64,000 nt of DNA, from the sequence record NC_006883.2. One strand, given 5' to 3'. Made by a program: the position numbers and the translations under genes. The notes under the pieces were generated by a model. The model did no database searches and was not told the origin of the DNA. It saw only the letters and a list, made by a program, of their open reading frames with translations. This document shows positions 15,411 to 54,435 of this stretch, in pieces (within the stretch, counting starts at the first letter, position 1; each line of letters begins with the position of its first letter).

Positions 15411-16315
15411 TGAGTAAACCCCTAAGTTTAGTAACAGGTGCAGCAGGTTTTATTGGATCAAACCTGACTGACTATCTTCTTGATTTAGATCATCAAGTTA
15501 TATGTGTTGATAATAAGAGTGCTGATAATGATAAGTTCCATTGGAACGATAAGGCATGGAATGTAGATTGTGATATAACAGATTACAAAGCTATGAAGAA
15601 TGTATTCAACAAGGTTGATTATGTTTTTCACTTGGCAGCAGAGTCAAGAATACAATCTGCAATAGACAATCCTATACAGGCAGTTCAGAGGAATTGTGTA
15701 GGTACTGCTACGGTGCTACAGTGTGCTAGAGAAGCTGGCGTAAAGAGATTTGTATATTCTTCAACCTCTTCTGGTTACGGTAATAATCCTTTTCCAAATG
15801 TAGAGACACAACCAGATGATTGTCTGAATCCTTATTCTGCAACTAAGGTTGCTGGTGAGAAACTATGTAAGATGTATACTAATCTCTATGGGTTAGAGAC
15901 AGTTGTTCTTAGATACTTTAATGTCTTTGGGCAGAGATCCCCTACAAAGGGGCAGTATGCTCCTGTGATTGGTATATTCAGAAGGCAGTTAGATAGTAAA
16001 GAACCATTAACTATTGTTGGTGATGGATCTCAGAGAAGAGATTTTGTTCATGTTAATGATGTAGCAAGAGCAAATTATCTTGCATCAATATTACCACTTC
16101 AAGGACACGAGGGTGAAGTGTTTAATGTGGGTAGTGGAAAGAACTATTCTGTTCAAGAGATTGCAGATGTTATTTCTGATAATCAAGTTTATCTTCCAAA
16201 GAGAGAAGGTGAGATGGACACTACTCTTGCTAACATAGATAAGATTGGTAGTATAATAGGATGGAAACCTGAAGTGGATGTAATGGATTGGATTAAAGGT
16301 GAGATGAATGGATAA
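15410..16315 (+). CDS. NAD-dependent sugar-nucleotide epimerase (GalE-like)
   Basis: TGAAGFIGS, SSTSSGYG, NPYSATK, LRYFNVFG, RDFVHVND. Confidence 0.9.
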   Translation: MSKPLSLVTGAAGFIGSNLTDYLLDLDHQVICVDNKSADNDKFHWNDKAWNVDCDITDYKAMKNVFNKVDYVFHLAAESRIQSAIDNPIQAVQRNCVGTATVLQCAREAGVKRFVYSSTSSGYGNNPFPNVETQPDDCLNPYSATKVAGEKLCKMYTNLYGLETVVLRYFNVFGQRSPTKGQYAPVIGIFRRQLDSKEPLTIVGDGSQRRDFVHVNDVARANYLASILPLQGHEGEVFNVGSGKNYSVQEIADVISDNQVYLPKREGEMDTTLANIDKIGSIIGWKPEVDVMDWIKGEMNG

Positions 16316-17099
16316 GAATAAAGCATCTAGTAAACTTAAGGGTTTTCCTCATGTATACTGTATTAACCTTGATGGTGAACCACATAGATGGGAATCTATG
16401 AAAACGATGCTTGAGTATTGGGAAGTAGAAAACTATACTCGTATCTCTGCTTATGATGGTAGAGAGGATGATCTAAGTGATATTCTTAAAGGTAGATACC
16501 CAGATTCTATGACTGGTGGTGAGGTTGGATGTACTACTTCACATCTAAAAGCACTTAAGGAATTTCTTAAGACAGATCAACCTTGTGCTATTGTTATGGA
16601 AGATGATTGTGATCTAAGTCCAGTAGCACACTGGGGATTTACTTGGAAGGATTTCTTTTCAAAGATTCCTTATGATTATGATGTAATTCAATTAGCAATT
16701 ATTAATCCAGCACAGGTACACCTACAGATGCATCGTAGGTTTGTAAATGATTTTTCTACTGCTTGCTATTTGATTACAAGACACCACGCAGAGAAACTTG
16801 TTAGATTACATTGTAGGGGTGAGGATAAGTATAAGTTAGATCAAGGTGTTAAACCTAGAGCAGTTGCAGATGATTTAATATACAATTCAGGTAATACATT
16901 CGCTATGCCACTCTTTCTCTATAAGATTGAGTTAGGATCTTCGATACATGATATTCATATCAATGTATTTCATAAGACAAGTTACGAAGGACTATGGCAG
17001 TTCTGGAGAAACGAATCTCCTAACATTACTGATTGGAATGCTTTGTTTTCGTATGATCCGTACTTCAACCGTATTCCACCAGGTTTTGAAGGTAAGTAA
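16308..17099 (+). CDS. Glycosyltransferase family 25
   Basis: YCINLD, GEVGCTTSH, VMEDD. Confidence 0.85.
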   Translation: MDKNKASSKLKGFPHVYCINLDGEPHRWESMKTMLEYWEVENYTRISAYDGREDDLSDILKGRYPDSMTGGEVGCTTSHLKALKEFLKTDQPCAIVMEDDCDLSPVAHWGFTWKDFFSKIPYDYDVIQLAIINPAQVHLQMHRRFVNDFSTACYLITRHHAEKLVRLHCRGEDKYKLDQGVKPRAVADDLIYNSGNTFAMPLFLYKIELGSSIHDIHINVFHKTSYEGLWQFWRNESPNITDWNALFSYDPYFNRIPPGFEGK

Positions 17100-32206: not shown

Positions 32207-32971
32207 ATGGCTATTAATTTTCCAAGCAATCCTAGCGTAAACGATACTCACACTGCAAATAATATTACATGGAAGTGGGATGGAACAACTTGGAAAGTTG
32301 GCATAACCACTTTTAATGCTGCTACTATTCCAGGTATTAGCACATCAGGGACATCATATTTTTATGATTTAGATGTTGCTCATAATGTATCAGTGGGTTC
32401 TTCTATAACTGCTGGTACTTATTTTGGTGATGGTGCTGGTTTAACAAATGTTGCTGGTACTACTGGTCCTGCTGGTCCTACTGGTTCTCCTGGTCCTGCT
32501 GGTCCTGCTGGTGGAACTGGTCCACAAGGTTCACCTGGTCCTGCTGGTTCGCCTGGTGCAACTGGTCCTGTTGGAAATCCTGGTCCTACTGGTCCTTCTG
32601 GTGGTCCTGTTGGTCCTCCAGGTCCTCCTGGTCCTGCTGGTGGTGGAACGGGTGGAACTATTGGTAGTGGATCCTTTAATGCAGTTGCAGGTCAAACAGT
32701 TCAGTTGGATAGTGTTACACAGGCTCATTTACTATCTGATTATGATATGTATTTCAGTCATAGTGCTGGTACACAATCTCAAAAAGTTACAGTATTAAAT
32801 GCTGGTGGAACTACTGCACACTCTCAACAATTTGGTATTATGTTTAATAATAATTTACTTGTTTCTGTTGGATCATCTATTCATAATAGTAATTTAACTG
32901 TAAATGTTACACCAGAGCCAGGAATAACTGGCACAGTAACGTATAAGTTCCTTAGAACGGAGGTATCATGA
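32207..32971 (+). CDS. Collagen-like fibre protein
   Basis: About 21 Gly-X-Y triplets (GPA, GSP, GPP) at 32456-32648 with one extra Gly interruption. Confidence 0.85.
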
Positions 32972-39213: not shown

Positions 39214-42200
39214 ATGGCTGAATTTAGACTTGGCAGATTAAAATTTAACTGGCGTAGTGACTGGACTATAAGTACTGCGTATGTTATAGATGACATCATA
39301 AAGTATGGTGCAAATACTTATGTTTGTAAGAAGAATCACACTTCTGCTGGTGCTGAAGAATCTTTTTATAGCACAGATCTAACACTTAATTGGTCCTTAC
39401 ATACCGAAGGAATTGTTAATAAGGGAAGTTGGGCAGCAAATTATTGGTATAAAGTAAACGATATATTCAAATACGGTAATACTCAATATAGAGTAACTAC
39501 TGGATTTACTTCTGGTGCTACTTTTGATGAAGCTGCTACTACTACAAATGTAGTTGAGTATTTACAATCATTTAATTATGAAGATACTTGGAGTAATTCA
39601 ACACAGTATCAGGATGGAGATGTTGTAACTTACGGTGGATACACTTACGTTGCAAAGAGCGTTAATACAAATAAAGCACCTTCATATAATTTAACGAATG
39701 ATTGGGATATTATAACTACAGGATTTAGTGTAGTTGGTTATTATTCTACAACAACAGATTATAAGCAAGGTGATGTGGTTCAATATGGTGGATACACCTA
39801 TGTTGCAATTACAACTAGTACAAATACTATCCCAACAACACCAGCAAATTGGACCTTAGTTACTAAAGGTGTTTCTTGGAAAGGTAACTGGGATTCTACT
39901 GTAAAGTATGAATTAGGAGATGCTGTAAAGAGATTAAGTAATAGTTATATTGGTGTTGCTACTGTTGGTAGTTTAAACGAAGATCCTTCAACTGACGGTA
40001 CAAGTACTTATTGGAGTATGTTGGCTGAGGGTGCTGCCAACAATGTGATGACCACTCAAGGTGATATGGTCTATTACACCACTGGTTCTGCTAGATTACC
40101 TAAAGGAACTAATGGTCAAGTACTCGCTATGAGTTCTGGTGGTGTACCTAATTGGGAATCTAATAGTGTAACACATCCAGTTTTCTATGTAACAGAAGAA
40201 GGAAGTGATACTAATGATGGTTCAAATATCAGTAGAGCATTTGCCTCAGTAAGACATGCTTGTGCAAAAGCAGCTGAAACAGGAAATCCTTGTTCAGTTT
40301 ATGTAAAAGCAGGAACATATTCAGAAACACTTCCAATTGTAGTGCCACCATTTGTATCTATTGTTGGAGATAACTTAAGAACATCTAGGGTTAAACCAGG
40401 TGTTCATTATGCACATACCTTTATAAGTGGTCTTACTGGTAGTATTACGGCAGATTCTGGTGGTCCTTTTACTGCTGGTAGTGGAACAACCTACGATTCT
40501 GCAACAGGAGACCTTGTATTAGAAATTGGAACACATAGTTTAACTACTTCTAATACTATTGGTATTAATGGTAATTCATTAACATTTACTTGTTCACAGG
40601 ATAGTCATGCTACTCAGCATACTTATCCAAGACCAAAGGATCCAGTTTACAATAAAACTGATATAGCAATTATTGCAACAACTGGAACTACAATTACAGT
40701 TAGAGTTGGTAAAGGAAATGCATCTAGGCATCAAGATCTAGTATTAGCATCTGCTCCTTCTTCTGTTTCATATGGTTCTTCAATCTTTAATGGTGCTGGA
40801 ACTAAATGTGCTGTTATCTTAGATTCAGATTACGCTGAGAAGAAGATACAAATCAGATGGCTTTCTGGTGGAGAATGGACAACATCAGACGAGTGGGAAA
40901 ATGGTGGAACAGATATAGGTATTACTTCGGTTACTACAAGACCGAATGAAGAATCAACAATGTTTATGTTAAGCAACGCAACGATGCTTAAAGACTTGTT
41001 GATGGAAGATATGACTGGTTTCAGTCCAGCAGGTATCGTTACAACTATAAGTTGTAGTATTGCTGGATCAAAAGTAACTGGTAGTGAGTTATTCCCAGAC
41101 TTAGTTGGTACAACTGTAACTGGTTCTGGTGTTTCAACTGGAACAAAGGTTAGTGGATTTATTGATGCACAAACATTAGAAGTTGATATAGTTCAAAATC
41201 TTGGTGCAACTGATCTTACATTTACAGCACAACAGTATGATCCTAATAACGCACATATTAAAGGAACCTTTTGTGCTTTAAACCCAGAAAGTAGAGTTAT
41301 TAAATCACCATACGTATCAAACTGTTCTGCAAAATCAGTTAGAGGTATTGGTGCAGTCGTAGATGGTGGGGTTCATAGACAATTTGTTGATGGATCAGCA
41401 ACACCTTCTAACAAATCTATCGTGTTTGACTCATTTACAAATATTCACGATGAAGGAATGGCATTCTGGATCACAGACGGTGCTGTGGCAGAAACAGTTT
41501 CTTGTTTCACATACTATAACCATATAAGTTATGCTGCTACTCGTGGTGGAAGACTTAGATCTCTTGTTGGAAATAGTTCTTGGGGTAAGTATGGTGTTGT
41601 AAGTTCTGGATTCAGTCCACTTGAAAAAGCAAGAGAAGGTGAGATTGAAGGATTAGTTCTTCAATATGATGTAGATAGTATGAGTGGATCTGGTTTCCAA
41701 GTTGGAGAAAGAATTAGAGGTAACACTTCTGGTGCTTGGGGTTATATTAACTCAGTACAAGGAACTACTCAAGAGAAAATATATTATTCAGTAATTAGTG
41801 AAGGTCCAGTTGGAGTTGGAACAGGATTTGGACCTGGTGAAACCATTACTGCTATGACTTCAGGAACAACTGCTCCACTTCTTAATAATACAAGTGCAAA
41901 CGAGGGTCAAGCTGGTCGTATTCTTGTTCTTAGTGGATTAGGAACATCACCAACCCTTGAAGTTAATGGTAGTATTGAATTTATTACTGGATTGGGTAAC
42001 GGTGGATATAATAGCGATAATATTACTGGTGCTGATCCATTTACCTTTGTGATCTCTGGTGTGAGTCAGACAGGTCCTACTGGTAAGGGTAATGTACAGA
42101 TTGACAGAGCACAGTGGTCTACTACTGGTGCAGCACATACAGGTGGAAGTACAACGTTTGTTAAGTATCCAGTTAATATTGGTGCTTCATTTACTCTGCT

Positions 42201-43194
42201 AACTCCTGCTGCTGCTGGCGATACTACTCTCAGTACGAGTACTATTAGTGGATTCAATCCAGGTGAATATTGTTTATCACCAACTAATGAACTTTGTAAG
42301 ATTGTTAGTTTCCCAACTGCAAACTCTATGAGTGTTCAGAGAGCACAAGATGGTGCTGGTGCTGCTGTTGCATATAGTATTGGTGACATCTTTACTTCAA
42401 TTGGAACAACTAGTTTTGTTACTTCAGCAGAAGTTAATAAAGATTTTACTGGTGTTTCTACTGACTTTAGAGCAACGATTTCAAATAGATTTGAGGATGC
42501 TGTTGGTGCTTATATGAAGATTGATGATGAATTTACAAAAGTAACAGGTGTTACTACTGATACTTACGGTACTACTACAGTAACTCTTGTTGAAGAAAAG
42601 GCTGCTAAATCCTTTGATGAACAGGATATTAAGATCCGCTACATCTTCAGTCAGGCAAGATTAACTGGACATGACTTCTTACAAGTAGGAACTGGTGGAA
42701 CATACACAACTAATTGGCCTGATGTTCCTTCACAAGATCCAGTTCAGACACAGGAAATTACAGAAGACTTCCCAGGAAGGGTATTCTATGTTTCTACTGA
42801 TGAACAAGGTAACTTTAGGGTTGGTAAGTACTTCCGTGTTAACCAGGCAACTGGTGCTGCAACGTTGAATGCTAACAGTTTCGATCTATCTGGTTTGACC
42901 TCAATTCGATTGGGTTCAATCGGTGCTCAGTTAGGTGCTCAAGTTAATGAGTTCTCAACTGATGGAACTATGGCACAAAATAGTAATGAGAAAGTGCCAA
43001 CACAGGCTGCGGTTAGAACTTATGTTGCTACTAGAGATGCAGAGCATCTTGTAATGGCACAAAACGCAGCAAACTTGGGTATAGCAACTGCATTAGCACA
43101 CGCTAACGCTGGTATAGCAACTTTAAGAACTGATGCAAACACTGAGTTCAGATCAGGAGTTCAGGTATCTGAATTCTTTGTTGGGCAAATCTAA
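39214..43194 (+). CDS. Large virion structural protein (1326 aa)
   Basis: N-terminal carbohydrate-binding-like repeats (W...T.Y..GDVV.YGGYTYVA) followed by a beta-helix-like region. Confidence 0.8.
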   Translation: MAEFRLGRLKFNWRSDWTISTAYVIDDIIKYGANTYVCKKNHTSAGAEESFYSTDLTLNWSLHTEGIVNKGSWAANYWYKVNDIFKYGNTQYRVTTGFTSGATFDEAATTTNVVEYLQSFNYEDTWSNSTQYQDGDVVTYGGYTYVAKSVNTNKAPSYNLTNDWDIITTGFSVVGYYSTTTDYKQGDVVQYGGYTYVAITTSTNTIPTTPANWTLVTKGVSWKGNWDSTVKYELGDAVKRLSNSYIGVATVGSLNEDPSTDGTSTYWSMLAEGAANNVMTTQGDMVYYTTGSARLPKGTNGQVLAMSSGGVPNWESNSVTHPVFYVTEEGSDTNDGSNISRAFASVRHACAKAAETGNPCSVYVKAGTYSETLPIVVPPFVSIVGDNLRTSRVKPGVHYAHTFISGLTGSITADSGGPFTAGSGTTYDSATGDLVLEIGTHSLTTSNTIGINGNSLTFTCSQDSHATQHTYPRPKDPVYNKTDIAIIATTGTTITVRVGKGNASRHQDLVLASAPSSVSYGSSIFNGAGTKCAVILDSDYAEKKIQIRWLSGGEWTTSDEWENGGTDIGITSVTTRPNEESTMFMLSNATMLKDLLMEDMTGFSPAGIVTTISCSIAGSKVTGSELFPDLVGTTVTGSGVSTGTKVSGFIDAQTLEVDIVQNLGATDLTFTAQQYDPNNAHIKGTFCALNPESRVIKSPYVSNCSAKSVRGIGAVVDGGVHRQFVDGSATPSNKSIVFDSFTNIHDEGMAFWITDGAVAETVSCFTYYNHISYAATRGGRLRSLVGNSSWGKYGVVSSGFSPLEKAREGEIEGLVLQYDVDSMSGSGFQVGERIRGNTSGAWGYINSVQGTTQEKIYYSVISEGPVGVGTGFGPGETITAMTSGTTAPLLNNTSANEGQAGRILVLSGLGTSPTLEVNGSIEFITGLGNGGYNSDNITGADPFTFVISGVSQTGPTGKGNVQIDRAQWSTTGAAHTGGSTTFVKYPVNIGASFTLLTPAAAGDTTLSTSTISGFNPGEYCLSPTNELCKIVSFPTANSMSVQRAQDGAGAAVAYSIGDIFTSIGTTSFVTSAEVNKDFTGVSTDFRATISNRFEDAVGAYMKIDDEFTKVTGVTTDTYGTTTVTLVEEKAAKSFDEQDIKIRYIFSQARLTGHDFLQVGTGGTYTTNWPDVPSQDPVQTQEITEDFPGRVFYVSTDEQGNFRVGKYFRVNQATGAATLNANSFDLSGLTSIRLGSIGAQLGAQVNEFSTDGTMAQNSNEKVPTQAAVRTYVATRDAEHLVMAQNAANLGIATALAHANAGIATLRTDANTEFRSGVQVSEFFVGQI

Positions 43195-43858: not shown

Positions 43859-44929
43859 ATGGCAGCAGACGTATTAACCTATAATGCTCTCGCAGAAGTT
43901 AATCAAGAGTTAAAGGCTGAATCTGCAGCATTGACAGCTGCTATTACTGCTGCTGAAAGTGGTGGTGGCGGTGGTGGAGCCGCAGAAACCACTACTCAAG
44001 CAATAATGAAGAATGCATATAGTCCAAATGCTGGATTATGGTGTATGATTCCAACAGGAAGTGCTTCTTCAGAAGCAGACCCTCATGCAGGTGGTTGGAG
44101 TGGTGGTATTAAAGTATGTGATACATCAAACTATCGTAGATGTGGTTGTTGCTGTGGATGGACTGTTCCAGGTGGCGTAACTTGTGCTCGATTCCAAATT
44201 TGGGGTGCTGGTGGTGGAGCTGGAATGGGATGTTGTTGTGGTGGATCTCCTAATGGTGGATCTGGTGCATATGCGTCTGTTATTATGCCTGTAACAGCAG
44301 GTCAAACTTATACTCTTTGTGCTGGTTGTGCTTACTGTTGTTATACAGAAAGAAACCAGATGACTGCTGATGGATGTCCATCTTACGTTCAAGGTCAAGG
44401 ATTAACAAACTTCTGTGCTGAAGGTGGCGAATCTAATATTTTCTGTGAAAGAAAAACTAGATGTCATTACCAGCCAAATCAAAGTAACGTTTGTCAGTAC
44501 ATGGGTGGATGTATATGTAATAATGGTTCAGATTATTGTGAAGAAAATTCTCAAACTCCTTCTCCTGGATATCCACAGCATAGAATGGACGCAAACTTCC
44601 CTGTAGCTGCGAGTTGTAAGACTCACTATGGATCAGCGACAGGTGGAAGTGTATATGGTATACCTGGAACATTTTCATTCTGGAAACATAATCACGGATC
44701 ATATAACCAGTGCATGAAGCACGGTGGTACATATGGATTCCCACAATGTTCTTGCTGTAATGCAACTATGAATAATGAAAATACTGGATGTTGCTACCAA
44801 GCATGTTATTGTCAAGCAATGCAATGTATTCCTGGTGCTGGTGCATGGGGTTACTCAACTTGCGGTGGAGACACTACTGGGTGTGCTGACATTGGTAAAA
44901 CAGGTATGGTTTGTGTATCATACTGCTAA
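43859..44929 (+). CDS. Cys-rich, Gly-rich-domain protein (putative fibre tip/adhesin)
   Basis: WTVPGGVT.ARFQIWGAGGG Gly-rich-domain signature; 36 Cys in 356 aa by hand count. Confidence 0.7.
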   Translation: MAADVLTYNALAEVNQELKAESAALTAAITAAESGGGGGGAAETTTQAIMKNAYSPNAGLWCMIPTGSASSEADPHAGGWSGGIKVCDTSNYRRCGCCCGWTVPGGVTCARFQIWGAGGGAGMGCCCGGSPNGGSGAYASVIMPVTAGQTYTLCAGCAYCCYTERNQMTADGCPSYVQGQGLTNFCAEGGESNIFCERKTRCHYQPNQSNVCQYMGGCICNNGSDYCEENSQTPSPGYPQHRMDANFPVAASCKTHYGSATGGSVYGIPGTFSFWKHNHGSYNQCMKHGGTYGFPQCSCCNATMNNENTGCCYQACYCQAMQCIPGAGAWGYSTCGGDTTGCADIGKTGMVCVSYC

Positions 44930-45657: not shown

Positions 45658-46725
45658 ATGGATGTATTAGTTTATAGTGCTCTGAATGAACAAGCTGCAC
45701 TGAAAAAAGAAATAGCTGAAAAGCAAGCCTGTTTATTTGATCTTAAACAGGATGCTAGTGCTGGTGGTGGTGCTTCTGGTTCTGCAGAATCTTGTGCTAA
45801 AGCTTGGTTAAATCGTGAAGATGGTAAAGGTGAGAAGGGGCATTGGAAAGATCCTGCTGATACAACTAAATGGCATGTTTGGGAAGGAGAAGGTTGGACT
45901 GGTGGTCTAAAAGTTTGTGATGGTACTGGTTATTATAGATGTAACTGTAGTTGTAACTGGACTGTTCCTTCTGGTGTAACAAAAGCTAGATTCCAATTAT
46001 GGGGTGCTGGTGGTGGTGCAAATAGAGGACCTTGTTGTTGTGCTCATACACCATTCGGATCTACTGGTGCTTATGCATCGGTTATTATTCCAGTAACTGC
46101 TGGTTGGACTTATTGTATGTGTACTGGTTGTGCTTATTGTTGCTATGCATATAGTCAATCTGGAGCACATAGACTAAATGGATGTCAAACTTGGGTAAGT
46201 GGATGCCACTTCTGTAATTTCTGTGCAGATGGAGGACAAGGTGGTTTAGGTGTTTGGATGTCCATGAGAGGTAACTACTGTGTTTGTAGGGTTGCTTCTG
46301 CACAAAATGATCAGTGTGGTGGGCAGATATGTTATAATGGTGGTGACTGGTGTTTCACTGGACCTAACTTTGGTGAGATATGTAATGTTCCTGGATCTCA
46401 TACTTCTGGATCTCTTTGCGATATCGCTTGTCCAACATTCGAGAATGTAATTTACGGTATTCGTGGAATATGGCCAAGTATGTGTTTCAATAGTGACCAT
46501 TATGGATGGGAAATGCATCCTCCTGTATATGGATTTGAAACTGCTACTAGATGTTGCCCTTGCTATACTAGTGGTAACTGTTGTGGATATGCGTGTAGTG
46601 CTTGGCAGAACTCTTGTTTAAGATATCCTGGTGCTGGTGGATTTGCATCACATGCTATGGGTGGTGGTACTAGTCACTGTGGTGACGTTGGTAAGTTTGG
46701 TATGGTTTGTGTATCTTGGAAATAG
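45658..46725 (+). CDS. Cys-rich, Gly-rich-domain protein, paralog of 43859..44929
   Basis: WTVPSGVTKARFQLWGAGGG, CTGCAYCCY, GD.GK.GMVCVS; 36 Cys in 355 aa by hand count. Confidence 0.7.
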   Translation: MDVLVYSALNEQAALKKEIAEKQACLFDLKQDASAGGGASGSAESCAKAWLNREDGKGEKGHWKDPADTTKWHVWEGEGWTGGLKVCDGTGYYRCNCSCNWTVPSGVTKARFQLWGAGGGANRGPCCCAHTPFGSTGAYASVIIPVTAGWTYCMCTGCAYCCYAYSQSGAHRLNGCQTWVSGCHFCNFCADGGQGGLGVWMSMRGNYCVCRVASAQNDQCGGQICYNGGDWCFTGPNFGEICNVPGSHTSGSLCDIACPTFENVIYGIRGIWPSMCFNSDHYGWEMHPPVYGFETATRCCPCYTSGNCCGYACSAWQNSCLRYPGAGGFASHAMGGGTSHCGDVGKFGMVCVSWK

Positions 46726-46749
46726 TATAATTTTTTAAATATAAAAATT

Positions 46750-46785
46750 AAAACCCTTGACTTATTCGGTTGAGGGTTTTATAAT
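46750..46785 (+). terminator. Terminator hairpin overlapping a sigma70-like promoter
   Basis: AAAACCCT..GAC-loop-GTT..AGGGTTTT; TTGACT 46757-46762, 17 bp, TATAAT 46780-46785. Confidence 0.75.
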
Positions 46786-46880
46786 GTAATGGTGTAGTGT
46801 AATCATAACCTAACACTCTTAGTTTGGTTGACTATATAAATCACCAATGATATAATATTAAACATTGAGGTTTGACTTGA

Positions 46881-47993
46881 ATGAATAAGGCGTTTTTCAT
46901 TAATGGTGGAGCAGGGCGTGTGCTTTGTTCTATTCCTGCATTAGAGAGGTTTGCAGAAACACATGACGATTTTGTAGTAGTATCTGAATCTTGGCATGAG
47001 TTATATTTAAACAGTAAAATATTACGAGAGAAGGTTTTTCCTTTTGGTCATAAAGATTTATTTGAAGATCATTTGAAAGATAAAAAGATAATATCACCTG
47101 AACCATACAGAGTAAATCAATATTTTAATCAGAAATGTAATCTCATACAAGCATTTGATATAGAGATTAATGAGTTGGATGAGATCCCAGAAACTAGAAA
47201 TATTAGTATAGATCTTAATAAAGAAGATCAAATAACTGGACATAATTTAACTGCTGAAGTAAAAGGCACTTTAGGTAAAGATAAGGTAATAGTATTTCAA
47301 CCATTTGGACAAGGTTCTAAATCTGAAGGTAATTTTATATACGATAGTAGTGGTAGAAGTTTTGAAGTTTCTAATATAATATCTCTAATTAAAGAGTTGA
47401 ATAAAAATTACGGTGTAATTATTATGACAACTATAGAAATTCCAGGATGGCAGGGAATGGGTGTTGCTTGTCCTCAAGGTTTAGGATTGAATGGTTGGAT
47501 GGGTGTTATTAACTCTGCGGATTATTTCTTAGGGTGTGACAGTATTGGGCAGCATATGGCATATGCATTAAAGAAACCTTCTACTGTTGTTATTGGATCA
47601 ACTTTTCCTGAAAATATTTCTTATCCAGATACTTCTAGATTTACTGTTATTGATAATGGAGAAGGAAGAAGACGGTATAGTCCAATAAGATTAACAATGG
47701 ATTTGAATGTTGATAGAAATAATGAAGATTTAATGGTACTAGACGATAAGAAGTTAAAAAATATTGTTAAAGGTATTAAAGATAAGATAGGTGTAAGTAA
47801 ATCAATAAATGTAGGAGTTGGGGTGACTCCTAAAGGTTCTTCTACACCAGAATTGGTATATAATAAACCCAATAAAGGAATTACACCTTCAAAGTATTCA
47901 ATCTCTCTTGATGGAGATTCAAAATCTTCAAAGAAAAAGAAAAAACCAATCGAAGAATTATTGACTTTAGAAACTAAAAAAGGATTATCTTAA
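46881..47993 (+). CDS. GT9-like (heptosyltransferase-like) glycosyltransferase
   Basis: GGAGRVLCSIPAL; IVFQPFG; INSADYFLGCDSIGQHMAYALKKPSTVVIGST matches the GT9 (ADLFIGNDSGPMHLAAA..P...FG.T) signature. Confidence 0.65.
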   Translation: MNKAFFINGGAGRVLCSIPALERFAETHDDFVVVSESWHELYLNSKILREKVFPFGHKDLFEDHLKDKKIISPEPYRVNQYFNQKCNLIQAFDIEINELDEIPETRNISIDLNKEDQITGHNLTAEVKGTLGKDKVIVFQPFGQGSKSEGNFIYDSSGRSFEVSNIISLIKELNKNYGVIIMTTIEIPGWQGMGVACPQGLGLNGWMGVINSADYFLGCDSIGQHMAYALKKPSTVVIGSTFPENISYPDTSRFTVIDNGEGRRRYSPIRLTMDLNVDRNNEDLMVLDDKKLKNIVKGIKDKIGVSKSINVGVGVTPKGSSTPELVYNKPNKGITPSKYSISLDGDSKSSKKKKKPIEELLTLETKKGLS

Positions 47994-47995
47994 TT

Positions 47996-49798
47996 ATGAG
48001 TAATATTATCTGTTCTATTTCTCGTGGACATAATGCTAGTACCACGTTGATGGTTGATGGTAAAATAATTTTTTATCTTGAGGAAGAGCGTTTATCTAGG
48101 TTTAAACGTGATGGTACTCCGTTGTTGGGGATGGCAAAAGTATATGAATATGTGGATCATATTGATCATTTAGTTGTTTGTCATACACATAGATCCGCAC
48201 CTACAGTTGATTGGACTACTGAGGATCTTTATAAATCTTGGATGAGAAAATTATGTAAGAGAAAAACTCCATATAAAATAACTTTTATTGATAGTATTCA
48301 CCATGAAATGCATTCTAATATAGCATTTATAAATTCTGGATTTGATAGTGCTGCTGCTGTCATTGCTGATGGTGCAGGAAGTTTTTTACATATTGAAGCT
48401 TTTGAAAATACAATATACGAATTTGAATCAATATATCATGTCAAGAAAGATTTAGATACTAAAACTGTGTATAAGCACTATGGAACAGACGAACCATGTG
48501 GATATATGTTATTAGATAGAGAAACCCAGAATCCAAATTTGATTATTACTGAGTTTCCTGGTATAGTGAAAGAATATGAAGCAATAACAAGATATTGTGG
48601 GTTTAATTCTATTGAAGCTGGAAAAACAATGGGTTTATCTCCATATGGAGAACCAAATCCAGAGATACCTCCAATGTTTGTGAATGGATTTGGAAATAGG
48701 AATTTATTTAAACCGAATTATCCAAATGGTGCATATGTTATAGAGGATCGATATAAAATAATTAGAGATGATTATATCTCTCATAATGGAGAAGTAGGAA
48801 CAGGAGAGTATACGCAGGTTCAAAAAGATCTAGCATATGCTATTCAGAAAGAATCTGAAGATCAAATGTGTGCTTTAATTCAAAAGGCACATGAAATGAC
48901 TGGAGAAAAGAATATTGTTATATGTGGTGGGTATGGTTTAAATTGTGTTGCTAACTATAAATTTAAGCAAAGATTTCCAAATCTAAACATATATGTTGAA
49001 CCAATTTCTCACGATGGTGGAACATCTATGGGTGGTGCTTACCATGTTTATTATAATGATTATGTAAAAACAGGGAAAGAATCTAGGAAAGTAGAACCAC
49101 CAAAAACAATATATTATGGACCTCAATATGATCCAGATACATACCTAAATTATATTCATGAGTATCCAAGTGCTAAAGTTACTGATGCTTCATATGATAG
49201 TGTTGCTAGGTTAATTCGTGAAGGTAATATTGTAACTATCTTCCAAGGTAGATCGGAAGCAGGTCCTAGAGCACTTGGAAATAGATCTATTCTATTTGAT
49301 CCTACTATTAAAGATGGTAAGGACATAGTTAATAGTGTAAAACATCGGGAGTTCTTTAGACCATTTGCGTGTTCTATTCTTGCAGATAAGGTTCATGATT
49401 GGTTTGATCTTGCTGGTATGGATGATTCTCCAAGTATGATGTATGCTGTAGATGCTTTACCTGGAGTTGCAGAGAAGATTCCATCAGTAATACATGTTGA
49501 TAATACTTGTAGAATTCAGACAGTTACTAAAGAGCAAAATGAACATTATTATAATTTGATTAGTGCTTTTGAAAAACTTTCCAACACGCCTATATTATTC
49601 AATACATCATTTAATTTGGGTGGAGATCCTTTAGTTGAAGATATTGATGATGCATTAGATACACTATCAACTAGTGATATTAATTATATGTATTTGCCTG
49701 AAATTCAAAAGTTAGTTGAACTAAAAACTAGGGAAATGCAAGATACAAGACAACAACCTATTAATATACTAACGGAAACTGCTGATACTAAATTATAA
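47996..49798 (+). CDS. Carbamoyltransferase (NodU/CmcH family)
   Basis: EEERLSRFK, HHEMH, GKTMGLSPYG, GGYGLNCVAN, GRSEAGPRALGNRSIL, KHREFFRPFA, NTSFN. Confidence 0.92.
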   Translation: MSNIICSISRGHNASTTLMVDGKIIFYLEEERLSRFKRDGTPLLGMAKVYEYVDHIDHLVVCHTHRSAPTVDWTTEDLYKSWMRKLCKRKTPYKITFIDSIHHEMHSNIAFINSGFDSAAAVIADGAGSFLHIEAFENTIYEFESIYHVKKDLDTKTVYKHYGTDEPCGYMLLDRETQNPNLIITEFPGIVKEYEAITRYCGFNSIEAGKTMGLSPYGEPNPEIPPMFVNGFGNRNLFKPNYPNGAYVIEDRYKIIRDDYISHNGEVGTGEYTQVQKDLAYAIQKESEDQMCALIQKAHEMTGEKNIVICGGYGLNCVANYKFKQRFPNLNIYVEPISHDGGTSMGGAYHVYYNDYVKTGKESRKVEPPKTIYYGPQYDPDTYLNYIHEYPSAKVTDASYDSVARLIREGNIVTIFQGRSEAGPRALGNRSILFDPTIKDGKDIVNSVKHREFFRPFACSILADKVHDWFDLAGMDDSPSMMYAVDALPGVAEKIPSVIHVDNTCRIQTVTKEQNEHYYNLISAFEKLSNTPILFNTSFNLGGDPLVEDIDDALDTLSTSDINYMYLPEIQKLVELKTREMQDTRQQPINILTETADTKL

Positions 49799-50214
49799 TG
49801 CAGAACGATATTGTTTGGTGCAACGGCACATTCGATATTCTTCATCCAGGACACATAGAACTATTCAAGGTTGCTAGATCTCTAGGAGACAAAGTAATAG
49901 TTGCTACGGATACGGATGAGAAGATTCGTACTGACAAAGGTGAGCATCGCCCTATAAACGATCTTTGTTATAGGGTTGCTATGCTTGAGGCAATCAAGTA
50001 TATTGATGTGGTACATACCTTTGGTAGTAGGAAAGAGTTAGAGGATCTAATTGAACTATACCAACCTGATATATTATTACTTGGTGATGATTGGAGGGAT
50101 GGTGATGTAGTTGGTTGGGAACACGCTGGTGAGGTAAGACATCTTCCTAGAGTAGGTGGATATGCCAGCAGTAATGTCATCAAAAAGATTAATGAAAGTA
50201 CTGTTACTGGGTGA
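49798..50214 (+). CDS. Sugar-phosphate nucleotidyltransferase (RfaE/HldE domain II-like)
   Basis: NGTFDILHPGH, KGEHRPIN, SSNVIKKI. Confidence 0.88.
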   Translation: MQNDIVWCNGTFDILHPGHIELFKVARSLGDKVIVATDTDEKIRTDKGEHRPINDLCYRVAMLEAIKYIDVVHTFGSRKELEDLIELYQPDILLLGDDWRDGDVVGWEHAGEVRHLPRVGGYASSNVIKKINESTVTG

Positions 50215-50932
50215 TAGTTGTGAAGATGAGTACATCTATGGTAGGTGTACTAGGTTAAGTCCAGAGGCTCCTGTACCTGTATTAGATTATGCTAAGTTAC
50301 AAACTAAATCTGGTATGGCAGGTAACGTTTGTTTAAACTTACAATCATTTGGTCTTGACATAACATTTTTAACTAACCCTGAGAAGATAGTAAAGACAAG
50401 ATTTATTGATGAGAAATCAAATCAACAGATACTCAGAGTTGATAATGAGACTAGAGTAAAACCTTTATTGGTTCCTGTAGCAACAAATAGTTTTGATGCA
50501 GTTGTTATTTCGGATTATAATAAAGGGTATCTACCTACAGAAAAGATATTTGAAATTGTAGAGAGTGCAACTTGCCCTGTTTTTATTGATAGTAAGAAAA
50601 CTGTTCTTCCTAACAAAGAGAATTGCTTTGTTAAGATAAATGATGTAGAATATGAGAAGTTACAGCATGATTGTTATATTGATAATCTGATAGTAACGAA
50701 AGGATCTCAAGGATGTGTTTACAAACAAACTTTATATCCAGCAGAGAAAGTAAATGTATATGATGTAGTTGGTGCTGGAGATACTTTTCTTTCAGCATTA
50801 GTCTATGGGTATATAACTACTAACAACATAGATGAATCCCTTATGATGGGAAATAGAGCAGCAGCGATTGCAGTTCAACAACCAGGAACTTACATTTTAA
50901 CAGAGGAAGATGTCCAAAAGATACTGTATTGA
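50192..50932 (+). CDS. PfkB-type sugar kinase (RfaE/HldE domain I-like)
   Basis: GDSCEDEYIYG..RLSPEAPVPV, ISDYNKG, DVVGAGDT. Confidence 0.9.
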   Translation: MKVLLLGDSCEDEYIYGRCTRLSPEAPVPVLDYAKLQTKSGMAGNVCLNLQSFGLDITFLTNPEKIVKTRFIDEKSNQQILRVDNETRVKPLLVPVATNSFDAVVISDYNKGYLPTEKIFEIVESATCPVFIDSKKTVLPNKENCFVKINDVEYEKLQHDCYIDNLIVTKGSQGCVYKQTLYPAEKVNVYDVVGAGDTFLSALVYGYITTNNIDESLMMGNRAAAIAVQQPGTYILTEEDVQKILY

Positions 50933-51254
50933 TATTGATGGTACAATTTGTACTCCAACTGTGGGTAGGGATTACCATAAAGCACAACCTTGGCAAGATC
51001 GTATTGCAAAAATAAATAATTTATATGATGAAGGTCATTATATTATCTACTTTACTGCTAGAGCGATGGGTAGATTTTCAGACCAACCTCATTCTATTGC
51101 TTCTGTAAAAGCAGAAGGAGTTCTATTTGATCTTACAAAGGATCAATTGGATGAGTGGGGATGTAAGTATAATGAATTGATTATGGGTAAACCTCATGCA
51201 GATTTATTCATAGATGACAAAGGAATTAACTGTGATGACTTCTTCAGAGATTAA
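50910..51254 (+). CDS. Minimal HAD-family phosphatase
   Basis: IDIDGTIC, GKPHADLFIDDK. Confidence 0.85.
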   Translation: MSKRYCIDIDGTICTPTVGRDYHKAQPWQDRIAKINNLYDEGHYIIYFTARAMGRFSDQPHSIASVKAEGVLFDLTKDQLDEWGCKYNELIMGKPHADLFIDDKGINCDDFFRD

Positions 51255-51591
51255 ATTTGTTCCTAAAGGATGGGGTTACGAGAAGTGGATATGTAATACC
51301 CCAGAATATTGTGGTAAACTTTTATTCTTTGCTAAAGGTAAGAGATGCTCTTGGCATTATCATCTTTTAAAAGATGAAACATTTTTCTTACAGTCAGGTA
51401 AGATACATCTCTTTTATGGTTTTGATAATAATATAGGATTGTCCGAGAGTATAGTTTTAGAACCAGGTGATAAATTTCATATTGAAAGAAAGATGAGACA
51501 TCAAATGTATGCTATGGAGGATTCAGAACTCTTTGAGTTTTCTACACAGCATTTTGATGAAGATTCACACAGGATCTTTAGAGGAGATTAA
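51235..51591 (+). CDS. Cupin (sugar isomerase-like)
   Basis: SWHYHLLKDETF...RHQM metal-binding cupin motifs. Confidence 0.8.
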   Translation: MTSSEIKFVPKGWGYEKWICNTPEYCGKLLFFAKGKRCSWHYHLLKDETFFLQSGKIHLFYGFDNNIGLSESIVLEPGDKFHIERKMRHQMYAMEDSELFEFSTQHFDEDSHRIFRGD

Positions 51592-52396
51592 GATATTGTG
51601 CTACATTTATAAACTGATAGTCCCATACCTTCTCTGCGATAGTTAGATATTGATATTTTCCTTTTAGATGTTCTGGGAATGGAACATATTCTATTTCCCC
51701 ATTATATTTTGCTGCTATTAATTCAGCAACAAGTTTAAAACTAATTGGGTTACTGGTTCCAAGATCATAGATCCCAGATGGTTTGTCATTATTAAGAACG
51801 ACTTCTACTATATCTCCAACCCAAATAAAATCTCTTAGATACTTACCTGAACCTTCAAATAGTTTTAGTTTACCTGTTTCCTTTACTTGTTTGGTAAACT
51901 TATGTACTGGACTTGCTTGGTCTCCTTTTTTATCTTCTCCTTCTCCATACACATTAAAGTATCTAAAACTTTGAATAGATGAGAACTTTTCTAGGTTGTC
52001 TTGAATGTAATAATCTATTTGTAATTTGGTAATAGCATAGTAATTTAATGGAGATATTTTATTGGGAGTACTTCCCATCAAACTCTTTCTTGTATTACCA
52101 TATACCGATGCAGATGAGGCAAATTTAACATCTATTTGATGCTCTATTGCCCTCTCAAACAGTTCTATAGTGAACCAAACATTAGTTCTATGGAGTTTAT
52201 CTATATCTGTTTCTGTTGTTGCTGAGATCGCTCCTTGGTGTAGTATAAGGGATACCTTATCCCAGTCCTTAAAATATGCTATCCAATCCCAACAATCATG
52301 CTCATCAACCGTGACGATTTCTTCATCAGAATGTTCTATTAGATACTTAAGAAAGTTCTGACCTATAAATCCTTTTGCTCCTGTTAATATAATCAT
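51578..52396 (-). CDS. rfaD: ADP-L-glycero-D-manno-heptose 6-epimerase-like (HldD/RfaD)
   Basis: TGAKGFIG, HQGAISATTETD, FASSASVYG, PLNYYAITK, FRYFNVYGEGEDKKGDQAS. Confidence 0.85.
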   Translation of the reverse strand: MIILTGAKGFIGQNFLKYLIEHSDEEIVTVDEHDCWDWIAYFKDWDKVSLILHQGAISATTETDIDKLHRTNVWFTIELFERAIEHQIDVKFASSASVYGNTRKSLMGSTPNKISPLNYYAITKLQIDYYIQDNLEKFSSIQSFRYFNVYGEGEDKKGDQASPVHKFTKQVKETGKLKLFEGSGKYLRDFIWVGDIVEVVLNNDKPSGIYDLGTSNPISFKLVAELIAAKYNGEIEYVPFPEHLKGKYQYLTIAEKVWDYQFINVAQYLNLL

Positions 52397-52890
52397 GGTG
52401 TAAATAATAGATTAAATGATGCTACTATTCTTTTCCCCTTTGATGGGGGTACTTCGTGATTCACTATAGATGGGAATAATAATAACATACCATTTTTTGG
52501 TTCAATTGTAAAATTATTCTCAAATATTATAGGTGAACTATTTTCTTCTACATCTATGTAGTATACACCTGACAGACCTCCTGGCCAATGATTATGTTTT
52601 ACTGCATGATTTCCTTTTTCATATTCCATCACCCAAAAATTTAAGGGATGTAAATTACAATTCATTTTTAAAAACTCTTGACTTTTTTTTAATATTTTAT
52701 CAATTAGAATCCTAAATCTTGGTTCTTTATAATGAGTATCAAAATGACTGTGCCATGCTTTTACATTACTATTATCTGATTCTGGATATTTTGTTCTAAA
52801 ATCAGATATAATCTTTTTTAATTTATTATTTAATTCTTGATAATCATCAAGAGTGTATATTCCAATTTCCGTTTCTGTTAATATAATCAT
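52393..52890 (-). CDS. 2OG-Fe(II) oxygenase (TIGR02466-like)
   Basis: HNHWPGGLSGVYY, LLLFPSIVNHEV, RIVASFN. Confidence 0.8.
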   Translation of the reverse strand: MIILTETEIGIYTLDDYQELNNKLKKIISDFRTKYPESDNSNVKAWHSHFDTHYKEPRFRILIDKILKKSQEFLKMNCNLHPLNFWVMEYEKGNHAVKHNHWPGGLSGVYYIDVEENSSPIIFENNFTIEPKNGMLLLFPSIVNHEVPPSKGKRIVASFNLLFTP

Positions 52891-52903
52891 TATAAATATT
52901 TAA
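52891..52903. promoter_or_regulatory. Overlapping divergent late-type promoters
   Basis: TATAAATA (+) at 52891-52898 and TTTAAATA (-) at 52896-52903, in a 30-bp gap between divergent genes. Confidence 0.5.
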
Positions 52904-52920: not shown

Positions 52921-54435
52921 ATGGCATTTGGACTGTTAAACAGCATTATACCACAAACTGGAACAGTTACTACTCTTCATACTGGAGATACTGATAAGTT
53001 AACTGTAGGTAAGATAACCGTTGGTAGTAAGAATTATAATCCATCTAGGATACAGATTGGATATAAAGACGGTACTGGTGACGTAAAGTATTTTGAGTAC
53101 AATAGATATATTAAGTATGGTGAAGTAATAGAAACTGAGAATCTTTATTTAGGTGCTGGACAAGATTTAGTTATAAGATCAACTGAACCTGATGTAAACT
53201 TTTTATTTTATGGTGAAACTAGTAATGATGTTATAAATCCTGTAAGATCGGGTGTATTAAGTCATACTTTATCTACTGGTGCAACAAAACAAGCATTGTT
53301 TACTGCTCCTGTAGGATCTCAGTCTAAAGTAACAGTATCTATCTGTAATTTAGGACCTGATGTAGCAACAGTAAAACTTGGTCTTTCAAATGGTAATTTA
53401 GCACTATTTGATGCTACAGAATATTTAGATTTTGGTTTTCAAATAGGACCAGGTCAAACATATACTAGACCTGATATTAAATTGGGGGAAGGGCAGTCTT
53501 TAATTGGATTTTCTAATCCCAATTCAAAGGTAACATTCCTTTGTCATGGTAAATTATTCTATGAAGTAAGTGGATTACCTACGAGTGATGATTTTGTTGT
53601 TCTTGGTAACTCTAGGTTTGATGGTAATGTTGGTGTAGGAAGATCTGCTACTGTAAAATTAGATGTAGTTGGTGATGCAATTATTACTGGTAATACTATT
53701 ATTGGTGGTGATGCAAAGATTAAGACTACAAATTATAATGAAGATATTGATAATGTTAGAAATGTAAGATCTATAGGAATATCTACATTCACGGGTGATT
53801 TTACTATCAAAGGTGATACTACTGATATACAATCTTCTACATTAAAAACAAAATCTATTGATATTGTTTTAGGTAATACCACAACAGGATCTTTTACTGG
53901 AAATGTATCTGCTGGATCAAGTCATATTACCAATGTTTTACCTACAGATAACCTAGCAAAGGATATTGTTATTACTCCAACAAGTCTTCCTGGTGGATTA
54001 AATATTACTGGATCACCAACGGTTCTATCGATAGGTTCTTCAACTGTTAATATAAATCAAACGGTTTCTGGTAATGGATCTGGTCTTGCAACATTCAATA
54101 TATCAGCACCTTCAGATGAGATTGCTAATAATGGTGGAATTATCATTAAAGGAACTACTGACAAATCTATACTATGGAAAAATTCTTCAGGTAGATTTGA
54201 GTTTAGTAATGGTGCTACTTTAAAAACTGGAATACTTCAAATAGTAGATGCAGCATCAGAAATTACAATTGGATCTACAACTGTTATTACTGCTAATAAG
54301 GTTTTTGGTAGATTACTTACCGATTTAATTGAAGATGGTAATGATACTACAAATTATATTCCAACAGCAATAGCAGTTACTAAGAGATCAAGGCAAGTAT
54401 CAGCAGAAGGATATTTTGCATCAAATTCAATATAA
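52921..54435 (+). CDS. Virion structural protein with two N-terminal beta-sandwich repeats
   Basis: Two ~100-aa repeats similar to 43247..43567, then a Thr/Gly-rich fibre-like region. Confidence 0.7.
   Translation: MAFGLLNSIIPQTGTVTTLHTGDTDKLTVGKITVGSKNYNPSRIQIGYKDGTGDVKYFEYNRYIKYGEVIETENLYLGAGQDLVIRSTEPDVNFLFYGETSNDVINPVRSGVLSHTLSTGATKQALFTAPVGSQSKVTVSICNLGPDVATVKLGLSNGNLALFDATEYLDFGFQIGPGQTYTRPDIKLGEGQSLIGFSNPNSKVTFLCHGKLFYEVSGLPTSDDFVVLGNSRFDGNVGVGRSATVKLDVVGDAIITGNTIIGGDAKIKTTNYNEDIDNVRNVRSIGISTFTGDFTIKGDTTDIQSSTLKTKSIDIVLGNTTTGSFTGNVSAGSSHITNVLPTDNLAKDIVITPTSLPGGLNITGSPTVLSIGSSTVNINQTVSGNGSGLATFNISAPSDEIANNGGIIIKGTTDKSILWKNSSGRFEFSNGATLKTGILQIVDAASEITIGSTTVITANKVFGRLLTDLIEDGNDTTNYIPTAIAVTKRSRQVSAEGYFASNSI

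Follow-up and report, generated by a model that had tools for sequence, protein, structure and literature searches.

A block of eight genes, PSSM2_307 to PSSM2_314, in the genome of Prochlorococcus phage P-SSM2 (NC_006883.2) resembles in part several described systems for the synthesis and transfer of heptose. The DNA analysed here, referred to as the window, is the final 64 kb of this genome (64,000 nucleotides; a window position is the record position minus 188401), and the block lies in a region (46750–52900, record positions 235151–241301) whose identity to P-SSM2 is 100% and to P-SSM5 99.9%; its genes are therefore already in the public annotation. Among the described systems, E. coli WaaC (HepI) and WaaF (HepII) of CAZy family GT9 have two Rossmann-like domains with an Asp-Ser/Thr-x-x-x-His donor motif in the C-terminal domain, are encoded in waa operons, and act on a Kdo (3-deoxy-D-manno-octulosonate)-lipid A acceptor. 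TibC and Aah (the BAHT group) are GT9-fold enzymes that heptosylate proteins (PMC4358343), and are a precedent for Ser O-heptosylation, from ADP-heptose, of a long beta-rich adhesin. In Pseudomonas, a GT9 heptosyltransferase gene and a NodU-type carbamoyltransferase gene share one locus, and heptose II of the lipopolysaccharide (LPS) core carries a 7-O-carbamoyl group, added by the putative NodU-type enzyme WapO/PA5005. Burkholderia and Neisseria make ADP-heptose by a split pathway of separate GmhA, HldA, GmhB, HldC and HldD proteins.

The P-SSM2 block has likenesses to each of these systems and departs from each. PSSM2_307 shares its fold and donor motif with WaaC and WaaF, but the sequence similarity is marginal, an arginine stands at the place of the catalytic Asp13, the gene and its relatives occur in tail modules rather than waa operons, and the picocyanobacterial LPS so far described from the sea lacks the Kdo-lipid A acceptor. 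With TibC and Aah it shares a GT9-related catalytic fold and a gene position beside a presumed protein substrate; however, it has neither their beta-barrel nor their four-Cys iron finger, its monomer model gave no sign of the beta-hairpin thumb or dodecameric ring, and it is nearer to WaaC than to TibC. The likeness to the WapO system, whose product is a carbamoyl-heptose, is at the level of gene combination, and the Pseudomonas system differs in being a cellular LPS-core system with heptose kinases that acts on Kdo-lipid A. As in the split pathway, there is a separate PfkB kinase, a nucleotidyltransferase of the cytidylyltransferase fold and an HldD-like epimerase, but a SIS-type GmhA is missing, the phosphatase belongs to the EcbF/BcbF group of haloacid dehalogenase (HAD) proteins rather than to GmhB, the kinase and epimerase are shortened, and a conserved metal cupin is part of the cassette.

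In cyanomyophages the genes and their rough LPS label have been known since 2005, when Sullivan et al. described 24 P-SSM2 "LPS genes" in two clusters and proposed that they alter the host surface. A later survey (Sullivan et al. 2010, PMC3037559) reported that T4-GC 304, 305, 307 and 308 co-occur in three phages and left it open whether they are functional or filler, and the 2025 S-SCSM2R paper (PMC12801897) still treats such genes as host cell-wall modification. These "LPS" or cell-wall modification clusters hold the same genes as the block, and T4-GC 302–308 were already listed; however, PSSM2_307 was unassigned, the transferase and carbamoyltransferase pair was not separated from the heptose cassette, and the missing GmhA was not noted. 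The P-SSM2 "LPS genes" have thus been in the literature for twenty years without a tested function, and we found no literature linking P-SSM2 to heptose. Mycobacteriophage virions are reported to be glycosylated (Freeman et al. 2023, as cited in PMC12801897); there too phage glycosyltransferase genes lie beside structural genes, although the transferase families, sugars and hosts are different, and the modification has been demonstrated by experiment whereas here it is deduced from genes. The present analysis adds a fold-level assignment for PSSM2_307 and for its family, the unusual residue at its catalytic position, its obligate pairing with a carbamoyltransferase, the division of the block into two modules, the absence of GmhA with a cupin as candidate replacement, and the linkage to tail genes across phage lineages.

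Two gene modules and their distribution

All eight reading frames of the block are intact, and Pfam and NCBIfam assignments were obtained for seven of the eight genes. The gene order is transferase, O-carbamoyltransferase, HldC-like nucleotidyltransferase, HldA-like kinase, HAD phosphatase, metal cupin, HldD-like epimerase and 2-oxoglutarate (2OG)-Fe(II) oxygenase. An earlier note on this DNA had read the region as a candidate virion heptosylation system; the genes that it named are all present where it placed them and carry the family signatures that it gave them, with its kinase start at 50192 corresponding to Met7 of the RefSeq open reading frame (ORF), which starts at 50174. It left out the 2OG-Fe(II) oxygenase gene (52393–52890, − strand) and the hairpin and two sigma-70 promoters described below. 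The surroundings are also as it described them, with Ser/Thr-rich fibre genes upstream (the fibre proteins contain 20–22% Ser+Thr), a fibre-like structural gene downstream at 52921 (phrog_11338 match, 6.7e-33), and no lipid A or Kdo genes nearby in the annotations seen. None of the eight block proteins has a transmembrane-like segment, and no flippase, polymerase, ligase or lipid-carrier genes are present among the block genes.

Relatives of PSSM2_307 are present in 354 viral contigs of IMG/VR, of which the best 80 loci were analysed; counts are given over the loci with enough flanking sequence. The carbamoyltransferase gene adjoins the GT9-like gene in every viral locus (66/66), and the two constitute an obligate pair. 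Fibre-module genes are nearly as constant, with a homologue of PSSM2_301 upstream of the GT9-like gene in 55 of 57 loci, and homologues of PSSM2_304 (57/63) and PSSM2_306 (60/69) in about 90%. The nucleotidyltransferase and kinase genes accompany the pair in 44 of 58 loci, and the cupin and epimerase genes in 42 of 55. Among cultured phages the transferase is found in P-SSM2/P-SSM5, S-SSM7/S-SSM6a, S-CAM1, S-CAM3 and Sf-FS3. The gene order of the block recurs in S-SSM7, S-CAM1, S-CAM3 and Sf-FS3 and in dozens of viral contigs; its recurrence in these four other cultured cyanomyophages, as well as in the contigs, means that the block is not a chance assembly. In S-CAM1, S-CAM3 and S-SSM7 the order is fibre gene, small proteins, transferase, carbamoyltransferase and heptose cassette, continuing in S-CAM1 and S-CAM3 with an opposite-strand epimerase and another fibre gene; S-SSM7 contains extra inserted genes, and the stretch retrieved for it ended before the epimerase and the downstream fibre gene. 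Metagenome contigs show the full P-SSM2-type order. The S-CAM3 nucleotidyltransferase gene, annotated in RefSeq as a 129-bp ORF, was considered as a decayed copy and this was rejected, as tblastn reveals an uninterrupted homologue (L005:10842-11225) and thus a gap in the annotation.

The two parts of the block also occur apart. A freshwater contig retains the transferase/carbamoyltransferase pair and 2OG oxygenase genes without the heptose cassette, while S-T4, P-TIM68, S-SM2 and a 207-kb contig have the cassette but not the pair, in hli-proximal multi-transferase clusters. The block can therefore be divided into two modules that occur separately: a heptose cassette that is mobile, and a transferase/carbamoyltransferase pair linked to fibre genes. 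The association with the fibre cluster that the earlier note proposed to look for across cyanomyophages is thus seen for the pair, but not for the cassette, which is present in other glycan clusters as well, metagenome contigs included. In large clusters of this kind the genes found with the cassette, which hint at further sugar chemistry, are transketolase-like (split), class II aldolase and Zn alcohol dehydrogenase genes and one for a second large nucleotidyltransferase.

Remote homologues of the transferase (25–29% identity) are encoded by about 30 N4-like vibriophages and by the Aeromonas myophage HJ05. The vibriophage homologue keeps the family motifs and sits between two tail genes, that of HJ05 is located between a fibre-like gene and the tail sheath gene, and no sugar-pathway genes were found near either. 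This placement among tail genes in independent lineages is the strongest argument that the transferase and the tail may be functionally linked. A scan of genome contigs with the alignment of close relatives found a single contig of a metagenome-assembled genome, with phage synteny; as the scan used narrow peptide patterns, absence of the family from cellular genomes is only suggested.

Predicted enzymes of the block

PSSM2_307 (46881–47993, + strand) is annotated as a hypothetical protein and belongs to phrog_8954, a PHROG of unknown function. The protein by itself has no Pfam match at E<0.01, its score against PF01075 (15.4 bits, E 0.011) is below the gathering cut-off of 22, and its only NCBIfam matches are at 16 bits, to RfaQ and heptosyltransferase III. 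Its relatives are more informative: at E<=1 every one of the 36 close relatives in the alignment is hit by PF01075, and at E<=0.01 the model also picks up 32 of the 68 diverse ones, the best at 1.2e-8. A word-seeded search yielded 2699 relatives, a few of them already annotated with PF01075, and an exhaustive search placed the family in 552 representative clusters. Searches of PDB sequences with PSSM2_307 alone or with a profile of its close relatives returned no match, and the profile of the 68 diverse members reaches WaaF (E 0.018) and WaaC weakly.

An AlphaFold2 model of the PSSM2_307 monomer was built on 36 relatives (pLDDT, a per-residue confidence score, 77.5; pTM, a global fold score, 0.77). 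It has two alpha/beta domains, the first Rossmann strand at residues 3–7 being followed by a helix at residues 11–27, and in a Foldseek search against the PDB its 22 best matches are all GT9 chains, led by WaaC (1.5e-9), WaaF (also at about 1e-9) and a Veillonella GT9 protein (TM 0.59), with TibC following at about 1e-7. The GT-B/GT9 fold predicted by the earlier note for this product is therefore present in the model. Its relation to Aah and TibC, which the note had also raised, does not extend to membership: as a BAHT enzyme PSSM2_307 was rejected, having no N-terminal beta-barrel and no four-Cys iron finger, and having WaaC-type structures as closer relatives. It contains four Cys in total; close relatives retain two of them, Cys16 and Cys219, but the wider family retains neither. 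Plant NDH-PSI supercomplex subunits (9grx_1, 7wff_a) also match the model in the fold search, and a search of the BFVD returned a 924-residue protein that carries the name 'Glycosyltransferase Aah/TibC', together with several transferases labelled 'family 9', from uncultured Caudovirales phages. The last ~60 residues of PSSM2_307 (312–370, window 47814–47993) are disordered and Lys-rich; a short motif at the C-terminal end is kept in close relatives, and the tail is absent from distant relatives of ~300 residues.

The donor side of the active site is well conserved. Asp220 (68/68 diverse relatives), Ser221 (67/68) and His225 (68/68) align with WaaC Asp261, Thr262 and His266, which hydrogen-bond the heptose hydroxyls and the alpha-phosphate (bioRxiv 10.1101/2021.06.16.448588), and they are kept in relatives that are 25–63% identical to PSSM2_307; their conservation argues for retained donor binding. 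ADP-heptose is the presumed donor, a choice that draws on this motif and on the heptose cassette adjoining the gene in about three quarters of loci. The catalytic position is different. WaaC Asp13 is described as a strictly conserved catalytic base (bioRxiv 10.1101/2021.06.16.448588), and TibC Asp110 occupies the same topological place, ~12 residues into the catalytic domain (PMC4358343), but 65 of the 68 family members have Arg at the aligned position. The N-terminal alignment that places Arg here scores poorly alone and is an alignment rather than a three-dimensional superposition, although it agrees with strand 3–7 and helix 11–27 of the model. The role of catalytic base could fall to one of two other conserved acidic residues, Glu74 (65/68) or Asp155 (68/68). 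Because Arg stands at the aligned place of the catalytic Asp and the TibC/Aah hallmarks are absent, we describe PSSM2_307 as a divergent GT9-like glycosyltransferase of the GT-B type, and not as a GT9 member in the strict sense.

The partner of the transferase, PSSM2_308 (47996–49798, + strand), is a NodU/CmcH/TobZ-family O-carbamoyltransferase, as the earlier note had it, with both Pfam domains, a Kae1-like N-terminal and a YrdC-like C-terminal one, above threshold (Carbam_trans_C, PF16861, 2.7e-56, 190 bits; Carbam_trans_N, PF02543, 1.2e-19, 71 bits). Its solved relatives are 7xb6 (6e-51), GdmN, NovN and TobZ, with E values from 6e-51 to 1e-42.

The next five genes constitute the heptose cassette. 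PSSM2_309 (49798–50214, + strand) is an HldC-like heptose-1-phosphate nucleotidyltransferase that matches rfaE domain II (TIGR02199, 1.3e-30; 106 bits against an equivalog cut-off of 181.5). It comprises the nucleotidyltransferase half only, so that the public product name 'Bifunctional kinase/adenylyltransferase' looks wrong, and as its next-best family match is glycerol-3-phosphate cytidylyltransferase the nucleotide is not fixed by the assignment. PSSM2_310 (50174–50932, + strand), a shortened HldA-like PfkB heptose-7-phosphate kinase, matches rfaE domain I (TIGR02198, 3.3e-43; 148 bits against a cut-off of 345), and the Burkholderia D-beta-D-heptose 7-phosphate kinase 4e84 (9e-13) is all that it matches in the PDB at E below 1e-6. 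The earlier note's "split HldE halves" are borne out in that both HldE domains are matched, but the order nucleotidyltransferase then kinase is the reverse of that in fused HldE, and the separate genes resemble naturally separate HldC and HldA rather than the parts of a split gene. PSSM2_311 (50910–51254, + strand) is a small cap-less HAD phosphatase with a DxDGT motif (TIGR01689, 1e-8; PDB 9iqw, 1e-10, and 1xpj, 5e-6) of the EcbF/BcbF capsule group. No GmhB model was matched in the NCBIfam search, but PSSM2_311 is a candidate for the GmhB step; its name 'phosphoheptose isomerase' in RefSeq and PHROGs looks wrong. PSSM2_313 (51578–52396, − strand) is an HldD-like ADP-heptose 6-epimerase (TIGR02197, 4.9e-62, 210 bits against a cut-off of 275) that matches E. 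coli HldD (1eq2, 4.4e-43) with the YxxxK motif aligned.

The pathway is not as complete as the earlier note supposed. No SIS-type GmhA was found among the block proteins, among ten proteins of the other glycan cluster in the window (5027–17099), or in any related locus viewed. The sole candidate in the block for the missing aldose-ketose isomerisation, which it may supply, is PSSM2_312 (51235–51591, + strand), a metal cupin of 118 residues with invariant His41, His43, Glu48 and His89, nearest to sugar isomerases, for which the public product name 'cysteine dioxygenase' looks wrong. Its only sequence-level PDB matches are D-lyxose and L-ribose isomerases (E 0.004–0.015), and the highest-identity matches in the fold search (24%) are D-lyxose isomerases, among many generic cupins. 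The fold matches cover unrelated functions (KdgF, HppE, CENP-C, CapF, D-lyxose isomerase and phosphomannose isomerase), and because of this mixture the idea of an isomerase draws on the weak sequence matches together with the step that the pathway lacks. Wherever the five-gene cassette was seen it included the cupin, which is very well conserved: of its 4708 relatives, the top 120 share 67% identity or more.

Taken at the level of enzymology, an ADP-heptose-type donor, a GT9-like transfer step and O-carbamoylation are well supported, and we consider this part of the interpretation likely to be correct.

A contig from the ENA (ERZ5402351, 139.9 kb) has nucleotidyltransferase, kinase, HAD and epimerase genes that are 95–99% identical to those of P-SSM2, and a transferase (65%), carbamoyltransferase (70%) and cupin (71%) that are much less so; this mosaic points to recombination inside the block. 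The last block gene, PSSM2_314 (52393–52890, − strand), encodes a 2OG-Fe(II) oxygenase and is co-oriented with the epimerase gene. Genes of this type recur beside sugar genes (PSSM2_314; PSSM2_262, window 9958–10569; S-SSM7_122; S-SSM7_132), and two of them flank the transferase/carbamoyltransferase pair in the freshwater contig; acceptor hydroxylation is one possible role.

Candidate acceptors and alternative explanations

These assignments suggest that the block could act as a self-contained, soluble, cytoplasmic sugar-tagging unit. From the family assignments, sedoheptulose-7-phosphate would be isomerised by the cupin, the only candidate in the block, or else by a host enzyme; the HldA-like kinase would phosphorylate the product at C1, the HAD phosphatase would remove the C7 phosphate, the HldC-like nucleotidyltransferase would activate the heptose, and the HldD-like enzyme would epimerise C6 to give ADP-L-glycero-beta-D-manno-heptose. 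PSSM2_307, by its fold and conserved donor motif, would then transfer the heptose to an acceptor, and the TobZ/NodU-type enzyme would O-carbamoylate the sugar or the acceptor, as proposed for WapO on Pseudomonas heptose II. The gene neighbourhood points to a protein of the tail-fibre module as the acceptor, either the large Ser/Thr-rich fibres or the Cys-rich PSSM2_304 and PSSM2_306, which would be modified inside the infected cell before assembly. It is very probable that the enzymes of the block produce a seven-carbon sugar in activated form and link it, together with a carbamoyl group, to an acceptor of some kind. Glycosylation of the fibres by the complete scheme is the leading explanation, which we hold tentatively and somewhat short of an even chance. 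A fibre acceptor is favoured because the position of the pair is invariable and homologues of the transferase lie in tail modules in two other phage lineages, and because the host group has no canonical acceptor and the Kdo-activating Asp has been lost. Heptose and Kdo are both absent from marine Synechococcus LPS (PMC4515613), which leaves GT9 enzymes without their canonical acceptor and makes sense of a donor pathway carried by the phage.

Several observations count against fibre glycosylation or weaken the steps leading to it. All of the pathway matches score below their NCBIfam equivalog cut-offs, so that the enzymes are described here as HldA-, HldC- and HldD-like and not as proven orthologues, and the matches fix neither the nucleotide (ADP or another) nor the stereochemistry of the sugar. 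With Arg at the catalytic position the mechanism of PSSM2_307 is uncertain, and it could even be non-catalytic; nor does it belong with the known protein heptosyltransferases of the BAHT group. Most of the 80 loci are from related cyanomyophages, in which shared synteny may be inherited rather than functional, and regions near T4-type fibre genes are hyperplastic. The presence of the heptose cassette in glycan clusters away from fibre genes means that heptose use is not bound to fibres. The P-SSM2 block is headed by host-type sigma-70 promoters whereas the flanking structural genes have the exact late octamer, and our literature search found neither a P-SSM2 virion proteome nor a glycan on any cyanophage virion.

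Some of these points fit better with the published view that the target is the host surface, in which the GT9-like enzyme, working at the membrane's inner face, would add heptose or carbamoyl-heptose to a glycolipid or polysaccharide of the host envelope, with superinfection block, prevention of progeny re-adsorption or deterrence of grazers as possible effects. Host-type promoters are consistent with expression ahead of the late genes, the cassette is part of large multi-transferase clusters in other cyanophages, and the Lys-rich tail of PSSM2_307 could hold the transferase at the membrane. To our knowledge, all biochemically known GT9 enzymes outside the BAHT group act on LPS cores, and the Pseudomonas core provides an example of a 7-O-carbamoyl heptose made with a putative NodU-type enzyme. 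For the P-SSM2 'LPS' clusters, host-surface alteration was put forward by Sullivan et al. (2005) and again in later reviews. However, the marine Synechococcus LPS has no heptose or Kdo, the block lacks a flippase, polymerase, ligase, lipid-carrier genes and any membrane-spanning protein, and the residue with which WaaC activates the Kdo hydroxyl is replaced throughout most of the PSSM2_307 family. Remodelling of the host surface would also leave unexplained both the constant position of the pair in the fibre module and the placement of remote transferase homologues among tail genes in the vibriophages and the Aeromonas phage, and we think it somewhat unlikely, though a serious rival. The replaced Asp could instead indicate that PSSM2_307 is a non-catalytic assembly or accessory factor for fibres that has kept a nucleotide-sugar fold, with the cassette serving other phage transferases such as those of the first glycan cluster in the window. 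This would account for homologues in the tail modules of phages with no sugar genes nearby, and for a cassette that works with other transferases in S-T4, P-TIM68 and S-SM2, but not readily for heptose- and phosphate-binding Asp, Ser and His residues that are invariant or nearly so at 25–63% identity, nor for the conservation of Glu74 and Asp155 as potential bases, and a chaperone would hardly be expected to pair so strictly with a carbamoyltransferase; we regard this alternative as improbable.

The nature of the carbamoyltransferase raises a further alternative, that what is made is a carbamoylated heptoside, present as a soluble metabolite, or else a sugar put on phage DNA by a GT-B transferase. 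The nearest solved carbamoyltransferases, TobZ, GdmN and NovN, act on small secondary metabolites, the T4 DNA glucosyltransferases are GT-B enzymes, and the Lys-rich tail of PSSM2_307 could bind nucleic acid. Yet the block has no base-hydroxymethylase, scaffold-synthesis or export genes, according to reviews nothing shows that cyanomyoviruses modify their bases or glycosylate their DNA (PMC2984593), and it would not account for a fibre-module location in three phage lineages; we regard it as very improbable. The suggestion that such genes are functionless 'stuffer DNA' for headful packaging (Sullivan et al. 2010, PMC3037559) is scarcely credible for this block: the P-SSM2 genome is unusually large, but the eight reading frames are intact with conserved catalytic motifs, the transferase has 2699 relatives by the word-seeded search and 552 representative clusters by the exhaustive one, with residues invariant down to 25% identity, 354 viral contigs carry it, and gene order is maintained across genera, so that the conservation data already contradict it.

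Modification of the fibres thus remains the explanation that we prefer, and a still broader version can be framed, in which many marine cyanomyophages have their own supply of ADP-heptose, with the cupin in place of GmhA, and use phrog_8954 proteins and the carbamoyltransferase to put carbamoyl-heptose on their tail fibres, while the vibriophage and Aeromonas myophage homologues do likewise with host ADP-heptose; in this entirety we consider it unlikely. In the ocean, cyanomyophages rank with the most abundant viruses, and it is the tail fibres that determine which strains of Prochlorococcus and Synechococcus they kill. If the broader version were true, glycosylation of tail fibres would be a widespread and overlooked factor in marine phage adsorption. 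If part of the "LPS genes" were shown to be a fibre-linked sugar-tagging pair, they would move from the class of host metabolism to that of virion modification, with a concrete and cheap prediction for virion mass spectrometry; the GT9 family would gain a protein-directed branch, and the pathway a possible substitute for GmhA that is not homologous to it. Should the target be the host surface, the block would still be the first heptose route to be defined in a host group with LPS reported as heptose-free.

Flanking genes and transcription signals

The fibre-module genes upstream of the block include PSSM2_301 (39214–43194, + strand), a large tail-fibre protein with 22% Ser+Thr that is a candidate acceptor, and two Cys/Gly-rich paralogues. 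PSSM2_304 (43859–44929, + strand), a candidate acceptor or partner, and PSSM2_306 (45658–46725, + strand), directly upstream of the block, are 38% identical, and each contains 36 Cys (10%), about 15% Gly, and an N-terminal helix-like segment and a Gly-rich linker; no relatives of either were found in Pfam or the PDB. Downstream is the gene for the fibre-like structural protein PSSM2_315 (52921–54435, + strand), which is preceded by an exact late octamer at 52891. Another small protein of the fibre module, PSSM2_296 (window 32207–32971, 254 residues), has 17 Gly-X-Y collagen-like triplets at residues 84–134; as to the idea of a collagen-like acceptor, such repeats occur in just this one protein.

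The 155-bp gap in front of 46881 contains a hairpin with a T run, two sigma-70-type sites and a late-promoter octamer with one mismatch. The terminator-like hairpin (46749–46781, + strand) follows PSSM2_306 and has perfect 9-bp arms and a 15-nt loop before the T run. It overlaps the first promoter-like site (46757–46785, + strand; TTGACT-17-TATAAT, 11/12 matches to consensus), and the second (46828–46856, + strand; 11/12 with an extended TG) carries the one-mismatch late octamer in its spacer. GC-rich hairpins are found at the equivalent place in S-CAM1 and S-CAM3, the S-CAM1 gap containing a terminator hairpin and then a late-type motif. The hairpin after PSSM2_306 and the promoter-like sites mark the block as its own predicted transcription unit. 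Sigma-70 sites with at least 11/12 matches number 12 on the + strand and none on the − strand of the window, where ~1.9 are expected per strand. The exact late-promoter octamer occurs five times against 10.5 expected, always on the + strand and in front of genes; it precedes the fibre-module genes at 43247, 44980 and 52921, and none precedes the block. A late-promoter motif, and overlapping early and late promoters for middle genes, have been described in cyanomyoviruses (PMC2984593). The timing of expression of the block may differ between phages.

The other P-SSM2 'LPS' cluster in the window (5027–17099) encodes Gmd (GDP-mannose 4,6-dehydratase) and further SDR epimerases/reductases, along with two GT2 proteins, single GT1, GT11 (fucosyltransferase family), GT6 and GT25 proteins, methyltransferases and a 2OG oxygenase, and looks like a pathway for a fucose-containing glycan.

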